Positions 24,832-59,200 of a stretch of DNA of 64,000 nt are shown piece by piece. The translations under genes and the position numbers were made by a program. The notes beneath the pieces are model-generated. The model searched no databases. It saw nothing but the letters and a program-made list of their open reading frames with translations, and was not told the DNA's origin. Position 1 is the first letter of the stretch, and the number at the start of each line of letters is the position of its first letter. Origin of the DNA: Ministeria vibrans ATCC 50519 (taxonomy: Eukaryota; Protista; Filasterea); the NCBI GenBank assembly GCA_943704425.1, contig CALSCP010001674.1:53822-117821 (forward strand), given 5' to 3'.

Positions 24832-27704
24832 TCTGACGGCAGCTGAAAGGGCTGCTGCTGCTACGGACGCGTCAACGCTGAGCAGACGCAACCGGCTGAA
24901 GCATCGGCGCCCCCGCGGCGGTGCAAAGGAAGGCGACAACGACGACGAAATCGCGGCGAAACGCGCAGCACTTCGACAGCGCGCTCGCGACTCCTTCGTG
25001 TCGCCCACGCCTGGCAGCGAAGATACGGACGGCCAGCTCCCATCGTCGTCGGCTCCGGCCGAGCCAGTGCCTGCAGTGCCCGCTGAGAGCGCGTCTGCCG
25101 CAACAACTCCACCCGGCAAACCCCAATCGAGACCGTCCAGCGTTCCACCGCCTCTGCCGCCAAAATCGCGAAGCATCATCACCATTCCTCCCCCGTCACT
25201 CCCACCCCCTACGCAGCCCGCGTCTCCTCCCGTGCTGCCCCGCCCCGAATCGCCCCCGCCGGCGCCTCCATCGGCGCCACCAAGTTTGCCTCCGTCACTC
25301 CCGCCAAGTTTGCCCCCGTCTCTCCCACCCTCCTTGCCGCCCGGTCTGCCCCCGTCCCTTCCCCCGTCTCTTCCGCCTCCAAGCCCTGCCGATCCGCCAA
25401 TGCTGCCGGAGACTTCGCGCTTTCCAACGTTGCCTCAAGACCTCACGGGAAACAGCGACAGACGCTCTGCAACCGAGTCGCCCGATGGCAGCGATCATCA
25501 TCAGTCCAGCGACACAGCCGACCCCGAGGCCATCCACGACGAGGACTCTTTCTTAAGCCCATCGGCACGGTCCAGCCCCGACGTCGAGAGTACGCTCGAC
25601 GCAGCCATTGAGGCGGCTGAGGCGGCCGTCGAGTCCATTGATGAGCATGATGATGCCCGTGCGCACGACGACGACGACGACCACAACGTCATCAACGAGT
25701 CGCTAGAGGAAGACGTTGCAGAGCAGGAGGAAGCGGATGAAGACGAAGGAGAAGAAGAAGGAGCAGAAGAAGCAGAAGGAGAAGAAGGAGAAGAAGAAGC
25801 AGAAGAAGACGTTGAAGAAGAAGGAGAAGGAGAAAGGGAAGAAGAAGGAGAAGAAGCAGAAGGAGAAGAGGAGAGGGAAGCCACACCGGACGAAGATGTG
25901 ATTGTGGTGGAGGACGAGACGCGCTCACATGGACTACTGTTGGACGGCGTGACGCTCACTTCCTCTGACGATCACCCGGCAGAAGACGAAGCAGAAGCCG
26001 ACCAAGACTCGACGGTACGCGATAATGATGAGGAGGACACACCGCAAGTGAACGGATCCGAGAGTGTTGATCCCTCCGAGAACGAGCTGATCGAGTCTCA
26101 GCCGGCAACACCGCGCACGCCAACGGATGGACAGAGCAAACCACCTCGTCGGCGTTTCTCCACCGAGATGACTCCCATTGTGGCTGCGGGCGCCACCAAG
26201 AAACTCCGACTGGTCAAGAAGAAGTCACGCGCGTCAATGAGCTCAGGCGAGTCATCGCTGACACCCAACGCACGACGTGACCGCGATGCCGTCGCCCGCC
26301 GATCATACAAGGGAGAAGAGGGTGTGCTCGACTCCATGGCACAGCGAGCCGAGTCGGAGCTGGAGCGCAAACGACGCGAGCGCGCCGAAGCCCGTCAGTT
26401 TCGTGATGAAGAGCGCGAGCGCCAGAAAAAGCTCGAAGAGCGACGTGTGGACGAGCGTCGCGCCCAGGAGCACGCGTCGCTCGCAGAACGTCAGCAAAAA
26501 CTTGCCCAATGGCGCGAAGAGCACAAAGACGACGACTTGCCGCCACCCCCCGAGCTGCGCGACGGTCCAGTGCGCGAAGAAGATGGCGTTGTGGCGGAGG
26601 CCCTTGAGCTCGCCAATCTGCCACAAGAGCCAGCCGCCCCCGACAGCAAAGATGCCCCCCTGTCTCTCGAAGCCATCTACAAGAACAAGTATGAAAAGGC
26701 AATGCGAACGGTTGCGCAACTGCACAACGACAAGGTAAAAACATATAATTATAAAGAGTTAATATATAATTATAGTAAACAACCCTTTTTTTAGAACACG
26801 TTGCGATTCCATTTGGAAGCAGTCAAGGACAAGCTGTCAGACTCGTTGGACCAGGTTCAGACGGACGCTCGCATTGTGCGAACGATGACCAAGGAGACGC
26901 GCGAGGCAAAGCGCAACTGGGCCGAGTCACAGGCGGAGCTGGAAGACTTGAGGATTCGTGTCGAGGTGTCCTCTGCAGACCTTAAAAAACTGCAGGGCGA
27001 ACGCGACCAGACTCAATCGGTGTTGAGCAAACTTGACTCGGAGAAGCAGGAACTCGATGCAGCCGTGCACAAACAGACTCTCGAGAAGGGAAAGCAGCAG
27101 GACTCTATTTCCAATCTCCGTAAGAAAATGCTTTAGTATTAATATTATTTTTATTTTTATCGACATTAATTTAATTTTTTGTTTTTGTTTTTGTTTTTTT
27201 TTTCTGGGTTTCAGAGGATCGCTTTAACAAGGTTGAAGCTCATCGTGATCGACTGCGCGAGGAGCTTGAAGTGCTCAGGACCAAGTTTAGTACCACCGAA
27301 AAAGAGGTAAAATAATAATAATAATAATTATTTCGTTTGCTCACAAGAAAACAACATTGTTGTAGTTGAAGCACGCCAAGGCGAACCGTGGCGTAGACAC
27401 GGAAGCGGTGGAGTCAATGCAAAAGCTGTGCGACAAGTTGGTGGAGGCTGAGAAGGAGCGAGTGGAGAAGGAGCGAGCGCAGAGAATTGCGTGTGAAGAG
27501 CGCAACGAGGAACTGGAGAAACAGCTGCGGGAGATCAAGTACAGCTCGACGAGCACCGAAGAGGACAGCGACACGCATCGGCTGGAGAAGCGAAAGCTTG
27601 AGCGAGAAATCAAGCGACAGGCGGATGCCATTGCGGATCTTGAGTCGCAGAATGAGCGACTGCAGTCTCGCATTGAGCGTCGTGAGAGACGCACCAAAGA
27701 ATAA
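24827..27704 (+). CDS. LRRFIP1/2-like coiled-coil protein with long Pro-rich/acidic N-terminal extension
   Basis: LDSMAQRAESELERKRRERAEARQFRDEERERQKK and KYEKAMRTVAQLHNDK|NTLRFHLEAVKDKL match the two conserved LRRFIP blocks. Four exons. Confidence 0.75.
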
Positions 27705-27774: not shown

Positions 27775-27837
27775 TGACTCACGTGAGTGACGTGACTCAC
27801 GTGAGAGATGTGTCATGTCACTGATGTGTCATGTGAC
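27775..27837. promoter_or_regulatory. Cluster of overlapping AP-1 (TGACTCA), E-box (TCACGTGA), CRE-half and GTCATGTGAC motifs
   Basis: TGACTCACGTGAG occurs twice (27775, 27793) and GATGTGTCATGT twice, 70-130 bp upstream of the ATG at 27905. Confidence 0.45.
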
Positions 27838-27904: not shown

Positions 27905-29580
27905 ATGCGGACAGTCACAGTCGGTCGCACCGCGACACTGATGGACGTACTGCAGGAGTCGTGGGGTCTCAGTCGCACACGGGTCAAACGGCTCGTTCGT
28001 GGCAAGATGGTCAGTGTGAGTGGACGGGTCGCGCGCGATCCAATGATGCAAGTCAACGTCGGTGATGAAATCGCTCTGCCTGAAGAAATCCAAATGATAG
28101 AAGGCCCCACCGAGCAACCCACTGGACTTCCTACTGGGCTTGCGATTGAGTATGAGGACGAGAATGTGATTATCTTGCGCAAGGACGCGGGATTCTCTGT
28201 GTTGCGCGAACATCGACCCTTTGCAAGTGCTCTCGCCTTTCTCTCGTCGCCCCCGGCCGACACTGCCATCTTGCGCCATGTCTCTGCCGGAGGTGGCACG
28301 CCCTGTCTGCTTTCGTTACTTCCGAAGAAGGTCGGCGGTCTCACCGCGCTGGTTCGCTCGCAACAGGCGTGGGCGCGGTGCGAGAGTCTTTTGGCCGAGA
28401 ACGTCTGTCGCATCGTGCGCATGCGCTTCCGCTGCATGCTCATTCGCTCACCTGCCGACATTCCGAATGATTTTATTGTGGAGAAGCCCTTTGATGGCGA
28501 GCCTGCACGCACCCGTGTGGTCGTTGTGGCGCGCACGCCGAGCATTACACAAGGCGAGCTGGTGACAGTGGACATGTACCCGCTCGAAGGGGGAGGAACA
28601 CGCATCTCGCGCAACCTCGAGCACGCGTCGCAAGTGATTGACCACGCACCCGGTGTGATCCTTGGCTTGGCGTCGGCCGGTCCGGGATTTGCACATGCCA
28701 AAGGCGTCTACCTGTCGCTCTGCGCGATGACTCTGTTGCCCCCCCTGGTTGACGAAGAGCATACAGTGGAAATTGCCGAACCCACAAAGTTTGAGGCGAT
28801 GCGAGAGCGCGAACTACGCGCCTGGAGCAAACGAGAACTAGAGCGGGATATGTTGGCGGAGCAACTGGGCTCTCCCAATGCAGTGCTTTTCGACAAGCTG
28901 CGGTTGCGCGTGTCTCCAGATGTGCTACGACCGCGCAAGGGCTCCGAGGCACTTGTCACTGCCTGCGCTGCCTTCCAGCCGACGCGTCTGCTCGACGTTG
29001 GCACCGGCTGTGGCTGTTTGGCGCTAGCTGTGCTCAATCGAGTGCCAGGTTGTCGTGCCATCGCCATTGACATTTCCGAGGCGGCGCTTCAAGTCGCGCA
29101 TGACAATGCCATGGCGAATTCCCTGTCGTACCGGTGTGTCTTCAAGCGAGGTAAGCACGCATACGTTCTACATGATTGTCTTTTTTTATTGTTTTTTATT
29201 GCCGGTTGTGTGTAGGAGACCTTGGGGCGCTTGAAGAGAGTGTGTTGAGTGGCAGTGCGTTTGATGTAATTGTGTGCAATCCACCGTATCTGGACAGTGC
29301 GCGCGCCAATGAGTATCACATGGAGGACCCTCACGAAGCCATCTTTGCCGATGAAGGGGGTCTGGGGGCACACCGGCGACTACTGGAAAGCATTGAGCGT
29401 GGAGGAGACCGTGTGCTTGTAAGGGGGGGTGCACTGGTGTTGGAGGTGAACAACCGACAGGCGAGTGCGGTGTGTGCACTGGCGCAAAGGGTAGCGCCGT
29501 CCTTGTGCTTTAGGCGTGTGGACAAGGATGCCTTTGGTTTTGACCGTGTTTTGGTGTTTGAGAGGGAGGGCGCTGTGTAA
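27905..29580 (+). CDS. Fusion: S4 domain + degenerate RluA/RluD pseudouridine synthase fold + HemK/PrmC-type SAM methyltransferase
   Basis: S4 (LSRTRVKRLVRGKMVSVSG), YEDENVIILRKDAG and GEPART. Then VSPDVLRPRKGSEALV, LDVGTGCG, DISEAAL, VCNPPY, KDAFGFDRV. Intron 29151-29215 restores the frame. Confidence 0.85.
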
Positions 29581-29635
29581 GATTATTAATAATAATTGTA
29601 TTTAAAGTGTACTACTATACATACATAATATTAAT

Positions 29636-31162
29636 TTACACTTTGCCACGACTGCGACGAGGTGGCGATGGACTGCGACTATATCGTCGTCTGTAGTCAT
29701 CGTGATGGCGGCGGTGGTGCGTATATGGTGAGGATGGATCTCTTTCGGAAGGGCAGGCAGGGGGACTGCGACTACGATTCCTTCTGGTGGAGGGACTGCG
29801 ACTACGACTGCGACGATTCCTTCTGCTGGGGGGACTGCGACTACGACTGCGACGATTCCTTCTGCTGGAGGGACTGCGACTGCGACTGCGACGGTTCCTT
29901 CTGCTGGGGGGACTGGGACTGCGGTGACGATGGTATGCACTTGAGGATGGTCTCCTCCGAGGTGGAGAGACCGACCTCGGTCGATAATGCTGCTCTCGCT
30001 CCCGTTCCTGTCGTCCACGCACCACTTCCTTGTCCTGACTCACTTCTTTGCGCAGCTGACTCTGCATGCGTTGTCGCATTTTCTCCAATGGCGACATCTT
30101 TTTTGTTGCGGCAGTAGGAGGAGTTGAGTTTGGTGTTGTTGCAGTCGTTTTGACAGTGGCGCCCTCACGTAGTTGCGTCTGTCGACACCTCTGTTCGCGC
30201 AACTCCTCCAATCGATTCATGCGCTCCATCATATTCCCTTCGGCCGACGAGTCCGACTCGGCGTCGTCTTCTCCGTCTTCTCCACGCTCCAAACGCGCCA
30301 GTTCCGCCTCGGCTGCCGCCCGGCCGGCCACTTCAGCACTCTCCTCCACCGACGTGGGACCACTTGTGCTTGTTGACGCCGAAAAGGGAATGTAGCCTTG
30401 GCCACGGCGCTTCTTTTCCGTGCTCACACGCTCCTGTTCGGTGCGCACCTCGTCGCAGTGGGCCTCCCGCAGTCGTGAGGGAAAATCATCGATGCCATAC
30501 TGCTGTCCAAGAAGAAGCAATCGCGCGCGCTTCTCTGCCGTCATGTCGATCAGAATGTCACCGCCCACAAACAGCCGATTGTACTCAATAAGTGCCTCTG
30601 CTTTGTTGCCCAGGCGAGACATTCGCTCCATTGCGCGCTCCCGTTCTTTTTCGAGTGCCTTGCTCGCAGCGCCAGGGCGCACCAGCGCCTCTTCTTCACG
30701 CAACTGTTCAAGGATGTCTCCTTCATTGACGCGACCCTCGCTGTCGCCGCCGCCTGCACAGGCATCACTGTCCTTGTCGACGTCTCCTGGCTCCTGGCGG
30801 CGATGCTCCTCGTCGAGAAGCACAAGAGCGTGGAACCGCTCAAAGGCAAGCAACGCCTCCACGGCCGCATCGTCGCCGCTCCTTCGCACACGCTCACTCG
30901 ACTCGCGCGGCGCTTCATCAACCCGGTCGAGCTGCCAGCGACCATCAAACCGGTCCATCTCCACGTCAAGCGCGTCGTGTCGCTTCACAGTCTCGTCGCC
31001 CTGTCCACAATGGACAGTCAGTGCGCGTCCGTGAATCTGTAGCAGTTGCGCATGATCGCCCGTCACGCTGTCCACATACGCCCGTCGTCGCTCTGCCCTC
31101 TTCTTCATCTCATCCATCGCACGATACAGCTTTTTCTCCTGCGCGCGACTCGCATGCCACAT
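29636..31162 (-). CDS. CLASRP: CLK4-associating serine/arginine-rich protein
   Basis: MWHASRAQEKKL...KKRAERRR...LQIHGR, MDRFDGR, FERFHALV, KMSPLEKMRQRMQSQL and an RS-rich tail. Intronless. Confidence 0.88.
   Translation of the reverse strand: MWHASRAQEKKLYRAMDEMKKRAERRRAYVDSVTGDHAQLLQIHGRALTVHCGQGDETVKRHDALDVEMDRFDGRWQLDRVDEAPRESSERVRRSGDDAAVEALLAFERFHALVLLDEEHRRQEPGDVDKDSDACAGGGDSEGRVNEGDILEQLREEEALVRPGAASKALEKERERAMERMSRLGNKAEALIEYNRLFVGGDILIDMTAEKRARLLLLGQQYGIDDFPSRLREAHCDEVRTEQERVSTEKKRRGQGYIPFSASTSTSGPTSVEESAEVAGRAAAEAELARLERGEDGEDDAESDSSAEGNMMERMNRLEELREQRCRQTQLREGATVKTTATTPNSTPPTAATKKMSPLEKMRQRMQSQLRKEVSQDKEVVRGRQEREREQHYRPRSVSPPRRRPSSSAYHRHRSPSPPSRRNRRSRSRSPSSRRNRRSRSRSPPSRRNRRSRSRSPSTRRNRSRSPPACPSERDPSSPYTHHRRHHDDYRRRYSRSPSPPRRSRGKV
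29745..29920. repeat. 39-bp coding tandem repeat (PSSRRNRRSRSRS)x~3-4
   Basis: Repeated GGGACTGCGACTACGACTGCGACGATTCCTTCTGCTGG units. Confidence 0.85.
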
Positions 31163-31372
31163 CGCGTGAGTACAAAGTAACACCAAAAATATTAATTTAA
31201 TAGGCAATAGCTGATTGATTATTATTAATAAAAATAATAATAATAATAATATTAAAATAATTAATTTATTATATTTTTATTATTATTATACATTCTTATG
31301 AATAATATTATTTTTTTCAATTATTAATGATACTATCTTATTACTCATTGTAATATAAACTAAACGTAACTT

Positions 31373-42419: not shown

Positions 42420-45400
42420 TTATACATTGGAGAAATACGACAGGAGGTCGGCCAAAGAAAATTCCAAGCGAACCTCAGAGCCAGGCCAACAACGTTTGAT
42501 GAGATCCTCGTAGCCATGGTATGCCGCAAGAAAGTCCTCTTGCACGGACCGCCACACGACCTATCAAACACAAATCTCAGTCACGTTGCACACAATCACA
42601 AAACACAAACAATTCGAGAGATGGAGAGGACAAAAACAATTATTGAACAATCACACACACACACACACACACACATACACACATACATACATACACACAC
42701 ACACAAAACACATACATACACACACATGGAGTACAAGACACTAAGTGTACAATAACATACTGGTAAAAGAGAGTCCGAGTCGGTGAGCTGCTTCTTAAGT
42801 GTGCGGTACATCGCCTCGAGACCCTTCTTGACGACTGCACCCGGGTACAAGCCAATGGTGCGTTTGAGTTCTTGCTTGCTAAACTGCACCTGAAAACCCA
42901 CTTCGTTGTCAATCACCCCACTGTCAATAAGCTGCTGCACTGCCTCAAAGAATCGCGACAGTTTCTCCATGGGATGGCCCAAACTGCGGCGCACATACGC
43001 CTGCAGGTTGTCGCGGTACTTCACCTGTGCATCACGACGCACTGGCGCGAGTGAAGCAACTTTGCGCAGCGGTACAAGCGAGCACAGATGATGGTAGTTG
43101 ACAAAGCAAACGACTTCCGGGTGCTTGCACGCACTGGCAATTCGCTCAATTGTCTCAAACACCGCCTGCATCAGCTGGCCCAGCGCACCGTCGACGAGCG
43201 TTCGCCATCGCGCCGAGTCTCGCACCGTCTCCTCCACCGCCCCAATAAAGTGCGGCAGTTGCAACACAAACGGCAAAATCACTGCACGGCCCTTCTTGGG
43301 CACTCGCGTGTCCCTCACCGCTCGCAACTGATCGTCAAAGAACCGATCCACAATGCGCTTGGTCAGAATCTGACATTTACCCAACAGCAAATAAATGAAG
43401 GTCTCCTTCACCTCGGGCAGATTGGTAAACTCGTCAATGCGCACCAACATGGCCAACGCCGACAACTGGTGGTCGTCGCCGTCGCCTCCTCCTCCTCCTG
43501 ACCCACTGCCACCACCACCACTGCCCCCACCACCCGTCATGCCACTCGACTTGTCGCTATCCCCGACACTTTCGGCTGCTGTCGATGTGGCGGTGGTGCT
43601 TGACGAGCCCGCAGTTGCATTGATGATCTGCACCAGTTCGTCTTCGAGCCAGGAAAACATGGAGTTCATGACGGAGCGCAGGGAGGCCATGCGCTGCGAG
43701 TAATCAAGGGAGGCCACCTGTGTGACCGACTGTCTCTTTTTTCGGCGTGCCCACTCACCGGTTGGCGTCGAAGGTGTACTGTCTGCGTCCGATGTTGTGC
43801 CCGTGACCACTGTCGACGTACTGCCACCGACACTAGACAGTGGGTGGTGATTGCTGCGCACAATACCACCGCCACTTGAAGCACTGGCCAGGCTCACCTG
43901 TCGCCGGTGCAGATAGGAGGGTGGTCGCGACGACGCGGTCGATGCCACTGTGGAGTCGTCCGCGAGATTTCCACCATCGTGGTCAGCGCTGCCGCCTGCA
44001 CCGTCATTGCCTGTTCTTGCTGCTGCGTCGTCATCGTCATCGTCGTTGTCGCCATCATCGTCGTCGTCATCGTCGTGTGTCGACCTGTTAGGCACGGCCA
44101 GACCAAAAAATTCCTCGCAAAAGTTCTGCTCCCCCACAACCAGTGGAACCACCGAACTGAGGAGCATGTGAAAGAGTTGCTCGGGGCCCGATGCTGTAGG
44201 ATTGCTATCGTGATGCTGTTGCTGTTCTTCGCTTTCAGCACGGCGGGCGGCAGCGTCGAGTGCGGCAATGACGGCAGCGTCGTTGTCGGTGCCTGTAGTG
44301 ATGTTGTCGTCGTCGTCGTCTTCGAGGTTGTCGTCGTTGACGGTCGAGCGGAACGTAAAGCGCGCGCGGTTGATGCGGGCGGACAGCGACGACGACGGTC
44401 CAGTGGCGCTGTTCGTAGACTGACTGCGACGGTTCTGAAGACGGTCGATGAGCTCGCGAATTTCGGTGTGATAAACGCCGCGCATGACCTGCGCGTACGT
44501 CGAGCAAAGCCGATCGTAGTGACTGCAGTCTGCATCGCGCACCCACTGCATAAGCTGGGTGTACGGCAGAAGCTGTGAAAAGCGCGACTGATGCGAGAGA
44601 AAGGAGGCGTCAGAGGTGCCGGCAGAGCGAATGACGGCCGTAAGAGAGTCGCTGAGGACGAGTGGGGAGGTGGTGTGGCGGCCAAGAAGTGACGGAGACA
44701 ACGGAGTGTTCTCAACGTGACGCACAAAAAGACGCGAGGTGAAGAAGGTGGCAAGGCGGTTGAGAAAGTCGTCTTGAACGGACGCGAAGAGAGCACGTTG
44801 GTCTTGGACAGCAACCATGTCCGTGAGAGCGTCGTCAAGCTCGCACTCCATGGCGCGACGCAGATGAGCTGCCGCTGCCGTGACAGCCGGCAAATTGACG
44901 CGCTCAAGTGGTCCTGTGCGCAGTGTGTTGACAACAGATTCCGGCAAGCTCATAGTTTCGAGGATATGATCGAGGAGATTGAGCAGTTTGCGTTTGTTGT
45001 CACGCTGCAGTTGCATTGTGCCATGGTGGCCCGTGACATGCTTGACTGCATCAGTGACGGCTCCCAAGGCCGACTCGTAGCGCTCGAGCCAACCGTCAAT
45101 GCGCTCCAGCTCGCTATCGGCGATGTCCAGACGGCACATGAGCTCTTCGGTCTTTTGAAAGGACTCAAGCAACTCGTGCGTGTTTGCCGCATCCAACTGG
45201 TGCATGTCCGACGCTAGCTGTGACGCAAAGAGTTCGGCATTGCCAATGGCGCCGTGCGCGTCGCGCAGCAGCGAAGTGAGGTCCATCTCTTCTTGTAGAG
45301 TCAGTTCGCGATACGTCTCGGTGTCGGCAGCAGCGGCGGCGTCGTCGCCCCCTCGGCTGGCACTGTTGCTGTTGGTGGTGGCGTCGTCACAGCCGCCGTC

Positions 45401-45886
45401 GTCGTCAGCGCCCGGCAAGGTGGCTGTTGTGCCCGCCGTCGCTGTGGCATCAGTGCGGAACTTGGAGAAGCCTGCAGCACGACGGGTGCGCAGGTTTTTG
45501 AGAGTGGGACGCACTTGGAGGTGAGACTGAGAGAGACGCACAATGGAGTCGACAAAGGCGTCGCGCGCAGCAACAGACGCCGACTGCCACACGAACGGCT
45601 TGGAGTCAAAGGTGAGTGAGAAGAGGCCGCTGTCGCTGGCGGCGTCGGGCGCAGGCCCTTCGAGCAGCCGTAGCTCTTCGAGCTTCCACGAGTGAATGCG
45701 CTTGAGCGACGCATCGCTCACCTTCACTATGTGAATGCTCGGCACAGACCCGCTCTTGAGCGTCAGACACAGCAGCCGCGACTTGGGCTTCTTCTCGGCC
45801 TTGCTGCGGTACGGGCTCACCTGCAGCACCGCTACGAGACGCTCGTTCGACGCGAAAATGTCCTTTTGCAATCGTCGAAGGTCCAT
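42420..45886 (-). CDS. EXOC1: Exocyst complex component 1 (Sec3)
   Basis: N-terminal PH-like block (RLLCL..WKLEELR), LGHPMEKLSRFFE, FSKQELKRTIGLYPG. Final exon VVWRSVQEDF...LIKRCWPGS after a (TG)n intron. Confidence 0.92.
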
Positions 45887-56249: not shown

Positions 56250-59200
56250 ATGAGCGACAAGACGGGATTTGTGCGGCCGCCATTGGGCAAAAAGCAGATT
56301 ACGCTTCGAAACATGACGACTCTGGAGAGCGTCGAGGAGGTGCGATGCGGCTGTGCATGTCACATCACGCAAACGGCCGTGCGAGTGTCCCCTGCGCCCC
56401 CCCCGCCCCCGCACCGCTGCGTATTCCACTAGATCCCGATAATTGACTGGTTCTGTGCCGAAGCCGCCCGCAGGAGCGCCCCGGCCGTTGACGCAAAGGC
56501 TCTTTTGATGACGCCAACGCAATTTGACTGTCTCACTCTCTCTCTCTCTCTCAACTTCCACTGCACCGCTCCCCCTCCCCTCTCGCATGCTCCCTTTTCC
56601 TATGGCTATCCGATGCGAACAGCATCAGTGTCTCGCGAGCGCTCATTTTTATTTCGCTTTACCGTTTTTTTTGTGCTTTTGCTGATGGACTGTGTGTGAC
56701 TTTTGGATGTGTAGGTGAAGAAGTCGTTCAATCGCCATCTGCACTACACGGTTGCCAAGGACCGCAATGTGGCCACCCCTCGCGACTATTTCCATGCTCT
56801 TGCCCACAGTGTGCGTGATCAACTCGTAGCCAAGTGGATTCGAACACAGCAGCGATACCTTGAGAAAGACCCGAAGGTGCGATCAAATATATTCATGGTT
56901 GTCGCTCATTGTTGTGTCTTACGTGTCTCTTGCTTTTGTCTTTTCAGCGCGTATACTATTTGAGCTTGGAATTCTACATGGGTCGGTCGTTGACCAACAC
57001 CATGATCAACTTGGGCATTGACGTGACCTGCGAGGATGCCATGTATCAGGTACGTCGCACCTGATTGGTTGCTCTGTTCTCTCCCTCCATTTCTCCAACC
57101 GCCTCCTTTTCTTTTTCTTTTCTTCCTTTTTTTGTCGTTCTCTCCATTCTGTAGCTTGGTCTGAATGTGGAGGACCTTGAGGCTGCGGAAGAAGACGCGG
57201 GTCTGGGCAACGGAGGACTGGGTCGGCTTGCAGCGTGCTTCCTAGACTCGATGGCGACGCTGGGCCTCGCAGCTTACGGCTATGGCATTCGCTACGAGTA
57301 CGGTATCTTTACGCAACTTCTCCGCAACGGCTGGCAACTTGAGGCGCCCGACGAGTGGCTGCGCAATGGCAACCCATGGGAGATTGCGCGTCCCGAGTAC
57401 ATGCTTCCCGTGCACTTTTACGGCAAGGTAGTCGGCGTGCCGGACGGGAAAGGGGGCGAGCGACGCGAGTGGGTTGAGCGTCAGACGGTCCTTGCCATGC
57501 CTTACGACACACCCATCCCGGGCTACAACAACAAGACGGTAAATCTGCTGCGTCTGTGGTCCGCGCGCTCGCCGAACGAGTTTGAGCTGAGCTACTTCAA
57601 CCATGGCGACTACATCCGTGCTGTCATTGACCGCAACCTTGCCGAGAACATTACGCGCGTCCTTTACCCCAACGACAACTTCTTTCAGGGCAAAGAGCTG
57701 CGTCTCAAGCAAGAGTACTTTCTGTGCGCTGCGTCGCTGCAAGACATTCTCATGCGCTTTCGCAAGAGCACCTTTCCCAGCGACAAGGCAGGCCCCATCG
57801 ACTACAAGCGACTCGCGTCCAAGGCGGCCGTGCAGCTCAACGACACACACCCATCGTTGGCCATTCCCGAGCTCATGCGCATTCTCATTGACGACGAGAA
57901 CCTCACATTTGACGAGGCTTTTGACGTCACGCGCGCCACGTGCGCCTACACCAACCACACGGTACTGCCTGAGGCCCTTGAGCGCTGGCCTGTTTCGCTG
58001 CTCGCGCTCCTGCTGCCGCGACACCTTGAGATTATCTACGAGATCAATCACCGCTTCCTCAACGACGTGCGCGCGCACTGGCCCGGTGACACTGAGAAGC
58101 TACGTCGCATGAGCATCATCGAAGAGGGGCCTCCCGAGAAGCGTGTCAACATGGCTCACCTCTGCATCGTCGGCAGTCACTGCATCAACGGCGTTGCTGC
58201 CATCCACTCTCAGATCCTCAAGGACGACACCTTCAATCTCTTCTTCCAGCTCTTCCCCAATCGCTTCCAAAACAAGGTACTTACGATAGAAATGCAAAGG
58301 TATTGAATATGAATACTCACACTGATGTACGACAGACAAACGGAATTACTCCACGCCGGTGGCTGCTCAAGTGCAACACAGCGCTTGCTGAAATCATCAC
58401 ACAGCACATTGGTCGCGAGTGGACCACCGATCTGTTCCAACTCAAGGCTCTTTTGCCCTTTATTGAGTCCCCCGACAATGGCGAACTGCTCCGCGAATTG
58501 CATAAAGTTAAACAGGTGAGTCAGAGAGGAGTGATTGCATGAGTTGTGGTGAGTGCACAAGCAAGTGGGATTTTGACGGAGTGGGTGCTGTAGGACAACA
58601 AGCTGCGACTGGCATCTATCCTGGAGGCGGACTACGGCGTGCAGATCAACGTCGACAGCATGTTTGACATTCAGGTCAAGCGCATCCACGAGTACAAGCG
58701 ACAGCTGCTCAATGCCCTCCACATGATTGTCCGTTACAACCGTATGTTTTAAATACGACTTCGTTTCCCTTGAGTCTGACTTTTTGTCTATCTACTAGGA
58801 ATCTGTGCGAATCCTGCCGGTGAGTTTGTGCCGCGCACGATCATTGTCGGAGGAAAAGCAGCGCCAGGTAAAGAGAGAGAGGAGGAAGAGAGAAACAAAG
58901 TGATAGAGAGAAAGAGGTTGTGACTCTCGCATGTGTGTGGCATAGGGTACCATATGGCTAAGTTGATCATCCGTCTGATCACGGGCATTGCGGATGTGGT
59001 CAACAATGATCCTGTCGTGGGCGACCGTCTCAAGATTGTCTTCCTTGAGAACTACCGCGTCTCCCTTGCTGAAAAGGTACCATTATTATTAATTATTTTT
59101 ATATTTCACACACACTTATACTATACTTATGGACCCACAGGTATTCCCTGCAGCCGACCTGAGCGAACAGATTTCGCTCGCAGGCACAGAGGCGAGTGGC

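Follow-up and report, generated by a model that had tools for sequence, protein, structure and literature searches.

Why would a eukaryote join a pseudouridine synthase that has lost its active site to a methyltransferase of the kind that modifies release factors? The question is raised by a gene at positions 27905-29580 (plus strand) of a 64,000-nucleotide stretch of DNA, here called the window, from the filasterean Ministeria vibrans ATCC 50519 (GenBank assembly GCA_943704425.1, contig CALSCP010001674.1, positions 53,822 to 117,821 of the forward strand). The gene product has about 536 residues and consists of three modules: an S4 RNA-binding domain, a dead pseudouridine synthase of the RluD type, and a methyltransferase of the PrmC/HemK type.

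One gene with three modules

The locus is a single two-exon gene, with exons and intron placed as follows.

27905..29150, plus strand: exon 1, 415 codons and one base that opens a split Gly codon; encodes S4, the dead synthase and the methyltransferase up to about its middle
29151..29215, plus strand: predicted intron of 65 nucleotides, GT...AG, with a T-rich tract ahead of the acceptor; read from the sequence, the PrmC profile resuming in frame behind it
29216..29580, plus strand: exon 2, the second half of the methyltransferase; stop TAA at 29578-29580; TIGR03534 positions 153-252 of 253, expectation value (E) 1.4e-15

An open reading frame (ORF) of 436 codons (plus strand) opens with the ATG at 27905 and continues uninterrupted as far as the stop at 29215, and a sequence-only reading of this DNA was right to place S4, synthase and the start of the methyltransferase in one continuous exon. 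Since the preceding gene terminates at 27704 and a stop in the same frame precedes the ATG by four codons, there is no space for an N-terminal extension. The intron is a prediction from sequence and homology. Its donor is GAG/GTAAGC at 29151, its acceptor AG is at 29214-29215, and removal of the 65 nucleotides keeps the frame (G + GA, a Gly codon). Searches, profile scores and trees were run on exon 1 (27905-29149) and exon 2 (29218-29577) separately. Against TIGR03534, the PrmC profile of 253 positions, exon 1 matches positions 30-138 and exon 2 positions 153-252, so that the splice rebuilds one methyltransferase domain.

Fold and ancestry of the N-terminal half

27905..28090, plus strand: S4 RNA-binding domain, residues 1-62, isoelectric point (pI) 10.7 (Pfam S4 at 21.2 bits, just below cutoff; phmmer match to the S4 domain of RluD; predicted local distance difference test score, pLDDT, 92-98 in the AlphaFold2 model)
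28136..28834, plus strand: RluA-family pseudouridine synthase fold, predicted to be catalytically dead, residues 78-310 (Foldseek, VIA, full-length alignments to stand-alone relatives)
28778..28825, plus strand: helix EPTKFEAMRERELRAW, a hallmark of the synthase subfamily (consensus EPxKFxxxRxRExxRW in stand-alone and fused relatives; helix 294-309 in the AlphaFold2 model)

The synthase escapes Pfam. A scan of the fusion protein gave no match to PF00849 at E<=1, S4 being the only domain to appear and that below threshold, and a PF00849 search of the whole genome did not recover the fusion locus. The doubt that Pfam cast on the identity of the N-terminal half was overruled by full HMMER and structure searches. 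A phmmer search of 1.84 billion representatives returned 67 matches, many of them proteins some 300 residues long whose alignments cover residues 22-310. In the PDB, phmmer aligned residues 21-97 with E. coli RluD over its S4 domain and first strand (IEYEDENVIILRKDAGF versus IVYEDEDIIIINKPRDL, E 2e-4). A feature search of the ESM Atlas led to clusters of S4 plus PseudoU_synth_2 (0.94).

The AlphaFold2 model of residues 1-310, built on the phmmer matches, has a pLDDT of 82 and a predicted template modelling score (pTM) of 0.73. Full-length RluD was its top PDB match in Foldseek (2ist, E 2e-14), followed by RluD on a pre-50S particle, RluA, RluC, RPUSD4, RPUSD1 and RluD-like factors of kinetoplastid mitoribosome assembly intermediates; E ranged from 2e-14 to 3e-9 for RluD, RluA, RluC, RPUSD4 and RPUSD1, and the kinetoplastid entries 7aoi_XP, 6yxx_EC and 7am2_BZ were among the top structural matches. 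VIA-align gave Z 18.2 to 2ist (model 1-310 versus chain 6-319), with Z 16-18 for members of the RluA family (RluC, RluA, RPUSD4, RPUSD1) versus 8-9 for TruB, RsuA and Cbf5. By descent and by modeled fold, we conclude, the N-terminal half is a pseudouridine synthase of the RluD type, as had been proposed. The accompanying claim of a full RluD-like motif series holds for fold and alignment (phmmer, Foldseek and VIA) but not for Pfam, to which this half is invisible as a synthase.

The nearest relatives form a subfamily marked by the EPxKF helix, which the window protein has as well. P0026 (463 aa), an active member that keeps HRLD, has a NUDIX hydrolase domain fused to its C terminus, and the subfamily seems prone to C-terminal fusions.

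Loss of the synthase active site

28313..28324, plus strand: SLLP in place of motif II HRLD, residues 137-140, with Pro for the essential Asp (alignments; no acidic residue close by)
28586..28627, plus strand: EGGGTRISRNLEHA in place of motif III, TGRxHQxRxHLA (alignments)

Twelve active-site columns are invariant or nearly so in 26 stand-alone relatives: four in HRLDxxT (H, R, D, T), two in KxYxA (K, Y), five in GRxHQxRxH (R, H, Q, R, H) and one D further along. All twelve are replaced in the window protein, where the residues are, in the same order, S, L, P, V, M, F, G, T, R, S, N and L. EGGGTRIS, starting at residue 228, stands for TGRTHQIR; GGGTRISRNLEHA is found where GRxHQxRxH would be expected, and MRFRC replaces KRYRA in the KxYxA strand. 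The column of the Asp holds Pro140, and the sole acidic residue between positions 110 and 150, D119, sits in a loop with pLDDT below 50. The sequence-only reading had drawn attention to the changes from HRLD to SLLP and from TGRTHQIR to EGGGTRIS, both of which are present, and had taken the catalytic Asp to be missing; the alignments likewise place no Asp at that position. With the catalytic Asp and the surrounding invariant residues lost, the module is predicted to be unable to isomerise uridine, its fold being kept.

A methyltransferase predicted to be intact

28886..28957, plus strand: beta-hairpin of the HemK type with the PR..SE.LV loop, LFDKLRLRVSPDVLRPRKGSEALV (alignment with residues 77-154 of E. 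coli PrmC, E 3e-9; conserved columns)
28991..29020, plus strand: LDVGTGCGCL, motif I, which binds S-adenosylmethionine (SAM) (alignments, conserved columns)
29278..29289, plus strand: NPPY, catalytic motif IV (alignments, conserved columns)
29323..29367, plus strand: HemK-family loop following NPPY, EDPHEAIFADEGGLG, matching EPxxALxxGxDGL (conserved columns)

The C-terminal part belongs to the PrmC/HemK type. Its top sequence match in the PDB is E. coli HemK (2b3t, 1t43; E 3e-9), and among the NCBIfam models both exons score highest with TIGR03534, PrmB scoring lower and HemK2 much lower. Conservation across bacterial PrmC sequences reaches 80% or more in 48 columns, of which the window protein keeps 37 and the genome's own HemK1 38. 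Retained columns include the hairpin Phe, PR..E.L, D-GTG-G, D-S-AL-A-N, NPPY, P-AL, E and D...R, and those lost fall in the N-domain. The equivalog cutoff of TIGR03534, 199.1 bits, is not reached by exon 1 (73.1) or exon 2 (57.4), the exons having been scored apart; it is also missed by the genome's own HemK1 (178 bits) and by the orthologs described below (110-179 bits). With DxGTGxG and NPPY both kept, as first noticed (LDVGTGCG in 28991-29020, NPPY at 29278-29289), we predict an intact enzyme whose SAM site, NPPY motif and HemK loops are as complete as in HemK1.

The N-domain of PrmC helps to hold the release factor. This helical domain (PrmC_N) is absent from the window protein, in agreement with the sequence-only reading, and the profile match begins at position 30 or later. 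Because only about 18 residues separate the last synthase helix (292-309) from the HemK hairpin (328-351), the S4 and synthase module occupies the place of PrmC's N-terminal helical domain. PF17827, the Pfam model of PrmC_N, matches nothing in the whole genome, the genuine HemK1 included, and is therefore uninformative as a test for the domain.

A fusion family in other eukaryotes

Three longer phmmer matches proved to be chytrid fusions of S4, a weak PseudoU_synth_2 match and a methyltransferase.

P0042: 602 aa, Borealophlyctis
P0070: 628 aa, Blyttiomyces
P0062: 661 aa, Chytridiales sp.

A profile of these three proteins and the window exon was used to retrieve further full-length members. 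About 30 relatives share the order S4, dead synthase and HemK, with the junction inside one reading frame. The window protein had been taken as a one-off; it probably belongs instead to an existing, unannotated family, and the recurrence of the same junction in some 30 proteins from other eukaryotes bears out the view that the fusion is no artefact. Members occur in Chytridiomycota (Rhizophlyctis, Dinochytrium, Chytridium, Polychytrium and Physocladia), in other fungi (Anaeromyces of the Neocallimastigomycota, Podila and Mucor of the Mucoromycota, Coemansia of the Zoopagomycota) and outside the fungi (the diatom Amphora, the green alga Tetraselmis and many metagenome contigs), whereas animal, land-plant and dikaryan proteins were absent from the high-scoring full-length matches among 8000 word-sharing candidates scored. 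Every member, KAJ3282862.1 and KAJ3415579.1 being examples, has automatic annotation alone, under the name "hypothetical protein," "SAM-dependent methyltransferase" or "release factor glutamine methyltransferase."

Catalytic loss goes with the fusion. Of 38 family relatives aligned, approximately 31 could be compared in motif II; none of these keeps HRLD, the readings being NFMD, TLLD, NTLP, NDLS, YQID, SLLD, HGLE, SSLP and, in the diatom-type group, PHYRAY. HRLD is kept by all 26 stand-alone relatives. Two short entries that look stand-alone and have dead motifs, P0031 and P0027, end in the HemK linker motif AY.TG and are truncated models of fusions, so that catalytic loss accompanies fusion throughout the sample. 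As to whether the Asp itself is always lost in this architecture, a point raised at the outset, the full HRLD motif is gone wherever it could be aligned, but an Asp or Glu still occupies the catalytic position in some fungal orthologs.

A diatom-type sub-clade (P0113-P0135 and P0152; P0132 is from Amphora coffeaeformis) has PHYRAYAQ for HRLDxxTxG and (S/A/T)RG for KPxG. This sub-clade may use the synthase module differently.

The chytrid ortholog P0042 served as a stand-in for the whole-chain structure of the window protein. Its full-length model (602 residues) has a pLDDT of 91.9 and a pTM of 0.84, high values for a three-domain chain that suggest a fixed mutual orientation of the domains. 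A 27-residue helix (295-321) follows the synthase module and leads through a short low-confidence linker (about 322-339) to the HemK hairpin. The C-terminal half superposes on PrmC in the PrmC-RF1 complex (2b3t_A) with a template modelling (TM) score of 0.72 and a root mean square deviation of 2.0, and Foldseek matched the ortholog's methyltransferase to PrmC at 7e-16 versus about 1e-8 for RNA methyltransferases.

A probable, divergent member and a third HemK

The window protein is likely orthologous to this family, judging from sequence comparison, and would be a very divergent member: identity is at most 28% in the N-terminal half and reaches 42% in the exon 2 half of the methyltransferase. 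In the synthase tree, 30 fused relatives grouped together, with a support of 92 in the Shimodaira-Hasegawa-like approximate likelihood ratio test (SH-aLRT), as did 24 stand-alone relatives (89). In the methyltransferase tree, the domains of the fused relatives formed a 100%-supported clade apart from bacterial PrmC and the genome's HemK1, and the exon 2 piece of the window fell inside it. Scores against hidden Markov models (HMMs) of the fusion clade and of PrmC were as follows.

Window exon 1: fusion-clade HMM 86.1 bits, PrmC HMM 85.4 bits
Window exon 2: fusion-clade HMM 76.8 bits, PrmC HMM 56.5 bits
Own HemK1: fusion-clade HMM 118.8 bits, PrmC HMM 162.0 bits

Summed over its exons, the window protein thus prefers the fusion clade by about 21 bits, and the genome's own HemK1 prefers PrmC by 43 bits. 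A single clade of the relatives and both window pieces was not rejected by the approximately unbiased (AU) test (p 0.64), and the constrained tree outscored the free quick tree by 10.2 log-likelihood units. The window protein also shares two marks with the fungal-type members and the two truncated entries, namely a three-residue insertion after the KxYxA strand (IPNDF versus GESF, GDEF) and a Cys three residues before the tetrad equivalent to HRLD (PCLL in the window protein; PECI, PKCI, PVCL and PRCL); both are missing from every stand-alone relative in the same alignments. Two tree results pull the other way. The window synthase has a very long branch (2.06) that leaves the tree where the fused and stand-alone groups part, with 38% support for joining the fusion clade, and the exon 1 piece of the methyltransferase (95 columns) joins a bacterial PrmC instead, in a tree whose rows are short and in which that PrmC had been selected for its similarity to the window.

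The fusion protein is not the only HemK of its genome. A separate HemK1 lies on contig C1778 (L004 1237-2259) as a single exon of 340 aa with GTGSG and NPPY, scoring 178 bits with TIGR03534, and an exon of N6AMT1/HemK2 type (VILFNPPYVVTP...WAGG) lies on contig C1243 (L014, about 1500-1640) of the 29.7-Mb assembly. The presence of a canonical HemK1 and an N6AMT1-like gene makes the fusion protein a third HemK paralogue and removes the concern that it might simply be the organism's sole HemK. Active-type RluA synthases occur elsewhere in the genome as well (e.g., HRIDRHTSG on C1392); a stand-alone member of the EPxKF subfamily was not found in it. A classical mitochondrial or plastid presequence is unlikely, since the folded S4 domain starts at residue 1-2 (pLDDT 96) and the N termini of the orthologs are short and acidic or neutral. 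The protein would consequently most likely reside in the cytosol or nucleus.

Proposed function

We propose, with a probability of about one half, that the S4 domain and dead synthase form a docking module for RNA or ribonucleoprotein that aims a glutamine-N5 methyltransferase at a ribosome- or RNA-bound target, a reading drawn from the ancestry of the domains. The module would serve solely for substrate recognition; most likely in the cytosol or nucleus, it would dock on a structured RNA or ribonucleoprotein, be it a pre-ribosome, a ribosome or a tRNA. The methyltransferase, held toward the docked particle by a rigid connecting helix, would methylate an amide or amino nitrogen on that particle, most probably in the glutamine side chain of an RNA-bound protein. 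Glutamine is favored because the catalytic domain resembles PrmC as closely as a true HemK1 does. That the synthase fold has been kept across diverse eukaryotes despite dead catalysis, together with S4 in the window protein and the fungal-type members, argues for a selected binding role. Synthase folds that work on ribosomal particles without catalysis are on record: a deactivated RPUSD4-type factor and an inactive TruD-type factor, mt-LAF4, are part of kinetoplastid mitoribosome precursors (PMC7957421, PMC7703582), and an RluD point mutant cited in PMC7957421 rescues growth although it makes no pseudouridine.

Some observations sit poorly with such a docking role. The pI of the synthase-like part is 7.2, compared with 10.7 for S4, so that this part is not basic; charge is mixed among the orthologs, and the charge analysis of the modules gave no clear basic surface signal outside S4. 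The diatom-type relatives lack the S4 domain, and free release factors may still be substrates of the PrmC-like catalytic domain. For docking on helix 69 of the LSU, as the sequence-only reading proposed, the evidence points neither way, the charge analysis included. We suspect, though we would not bet on it, that the family writes an as yet unmapped eukaryotic methyl mark. The mark would be placed on a ribonucleoprotein of the cytosol or nucleus, at a site picked by an RNA-reading pseudo-enzyme, and would be either an N5-methylated glutamine, in a protein of the ribosome or bound to it, or an N-methylated base.

Of the other explanations, two concern the substrate. The enzyme could be an RNA base methyltransferase whose dead synthase binds a stem-loop of the ancestral type and whose NPPY domain acts on a flipped base in rRNA or tRNA, methylating a ring or exocyclic nitrogen (m6A, m2G or similar). 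NPPY-type motifs are also found in RNA and DNA amino-methyltransferases, a synthase fold is suited to flipping a base out of a helix, and some orthologs show weak secondary matches to TrmN and RlmF-type models; nevertheless, we regard this as unlikely, because the catalytic domain is far nearer PrmC than any RNA methyltransferase, by the Foldseek values given above and by the TIGR03534 scores of the orthologs, and because it retains the HemK-specific hairpin and the EPxxAL...GxDGL loop. The same closeness to PrmC, the best family match by sequence and fold, speaks for a second possibility, namely that the substrate is a GGQ glutamine, in a class-I release factor that is free or in a GGQ-family protein, and that the dead synthase is a scaffold, dimerisation or regulatory unit; the automatic annotation of several members as release factor glutamine methyltransferases points the same way. 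However, the N-domain of PrmC is missing, HemK1 and the N6AMT1-like gene are already present for the two known release-factor jobs, and S4 (in the window protein and the fungal-type members) and the synthase fold (in diverse eukaryotes) have been retained despite the catalytic loss, which leaves this possibility about as improbable as RNA base methylation.

Far less probable still are the readings in which the synthase half remains an enzyme or the protein is not real. The acidic residues of some fungal orthologs at the catalytic position (NFMD, TLLD, YQID and HGLE), with motif III partly kept, might hint at a bifunctional protein whose synthase half works via other residues or on another substrate, but the His-Arg preceding the Asp is kept in no member, and the window protein has Pro there, no acidic residue within sequence reach and changes at all 12 site positions; we give such a second activity very little credence. 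Equally hard to believe is that two neighboring genes have been read as one or that the locus is a decaying pseudogene. The strong divergence of the window protein, apparent in its branch length of 2.06, would fit decay, yet a single unbroken ORF spans the domain junction, some 30 proteins of other organisms have the same junction, the methyltransferase motifs are fully intact, and the intron is canonical and frame-restoring.

Surroundings of the gene

Dense overlapping palindromes (TGACTCACGTGAGTGACGTGACTCACGTGAGAG) lie at 27775-27837, just upstream of the ATG, with CACGTG (E-box/G-box) and TGACTCA (AP-1/GCN4-type) cores; the cluster may be a promoter element of the fusion gene. Downstream, the fusion gene converges with a minus-strand gene at 29636-31207 that encodes a DRY_EERY splicing-regulator domain and an Arg/Ser-rich tail. 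As about 55 nucleotides separate the two stop codons (29578-29638), the 3' untranslated regions of both genes must overlap or be very short. Elsewhere in the window, an exon at 57167-58306 (plus strand) encodes the N-terminal half of a glycogen/starch phosphorylase (PF00343, E 3e-160), and a Sec3 exocyst subunit, by Pfam, is encoded at 42596-45886 (minus strand). Nothing in the window was marked as resembling human sequence. No relative of this Sec3 protein was found at E<=1e-20 among 5.8 billion proteins, and the first homolog search with exon 1 of the fusion gene returned short bacterial HemK proteins only, neither a close ortholog nor a self-match. With no close relative found for either protein, the organism appears to be poorly represented in public protein collections.

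Comparison with known systems and significance

The window protein shares with E. coli RluD, the 23S rRNA pseudouridine 1911/1915/1917 synthase of the RluA family, the order of S4 and RluA-family fold and motif I (YEDxxxxxxxKxxG). It differs in lacking the catalytic Asp and 11 other invariant site residues, in leaving PF00849 silent, and in adding the EPxKF...RExxRW helix and a whole methyltransferase domain at the C terminus. With the glutamine-N5 release-factor methyltransferases PrmC/HemK of bacteria and HemK1/Mtq1 of mitochondria it has in common the hairpin, the PR..(S/T)E loop, DxGTGxG, NPPY and the EPxxAL...GxDGL loop; unlike them, it has S4 and a dead synthase for the helical N-domain and scores under the TIGR03534 cutoff, and the methyltransferase domains of its fused relatives form their own 100%-supported clade. 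The kinetoplastid mitoribosome-assembly factors (RPUSD4-like, mt-LAF4) likewise keep the synthase fold as a non-catalytic binder of RNA or ribosomes, a binding role that is proposed for the window protein by inference, but they are stand-alone and mitochondrial, whereas the window protein is fused to a methyltransferase predicted to be active and is unlikely to carry a presequence.

Fusions of an RNA-binding module to a methyltransferase are familiar from S4-FtsJ in TlyA and from the THUMP or PUA methyltransferases. These follow the same logic, a Rossmann-fold methyltransferase being aimed by a module that docks on nucleic acid, and PrmC, too, is known from fusions, as in PrmC/TrmB (NCBIfam NF002421). 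To our knowledge, none of the TlyA, THUMP/PUA or PrmC/TrmB fusions uses a dead pseudouridine synthase as its docking module, and we know of none that joins an RNA-binding module to a PrmC-type protein-glutamine methyltransferase. A full-text literature search found no paper describing a fusion of pseudouridine synthase and HemK. Both domains and the general logic, a docking module on a methyltransferase and a pseudo-enzyme as binder, are already known; as far as can be told, what is new is the combination of synthase and HemK and, with it, a third eukaryotic HemK lineage.

In sum, this study defines a third conserved HemK lineage in which the domain that recognizes release factors has been exchanged for a dead RNA-modifying enzyme. 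As far as we know, eukaryotes have been thought to possess two HemK-type enzymes, HemK1/Mtq1 and HemK2/N6AMT1, both directed at release factors, and for members of the fusion family the automatic label of release factor glutamine methyltransferase is corrected by this work. The family would be a clear example of a pseudo-enzyme put to new use in targeting, and it provides a natural experiment on the role of the pseudouridine synthase fold after catalysis has been lost. If the enzyme is indeed guided by RNA, it would be the first RNA-guided protein methyltransferase of the PrmC type and a functionally distinct third HemK paralogue of eukaryotes, and if its target is a glutamine of a ribosomal protein or an RNA base, it would add a new modification of the translation machinery. 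The importance of the finding hinges on the substrate of the fusion enzyme, which should be directly findable given that the family is present in genetically tractable organisms such as Mucor, Mortierella-type fungi, some chytrids and diatoms.

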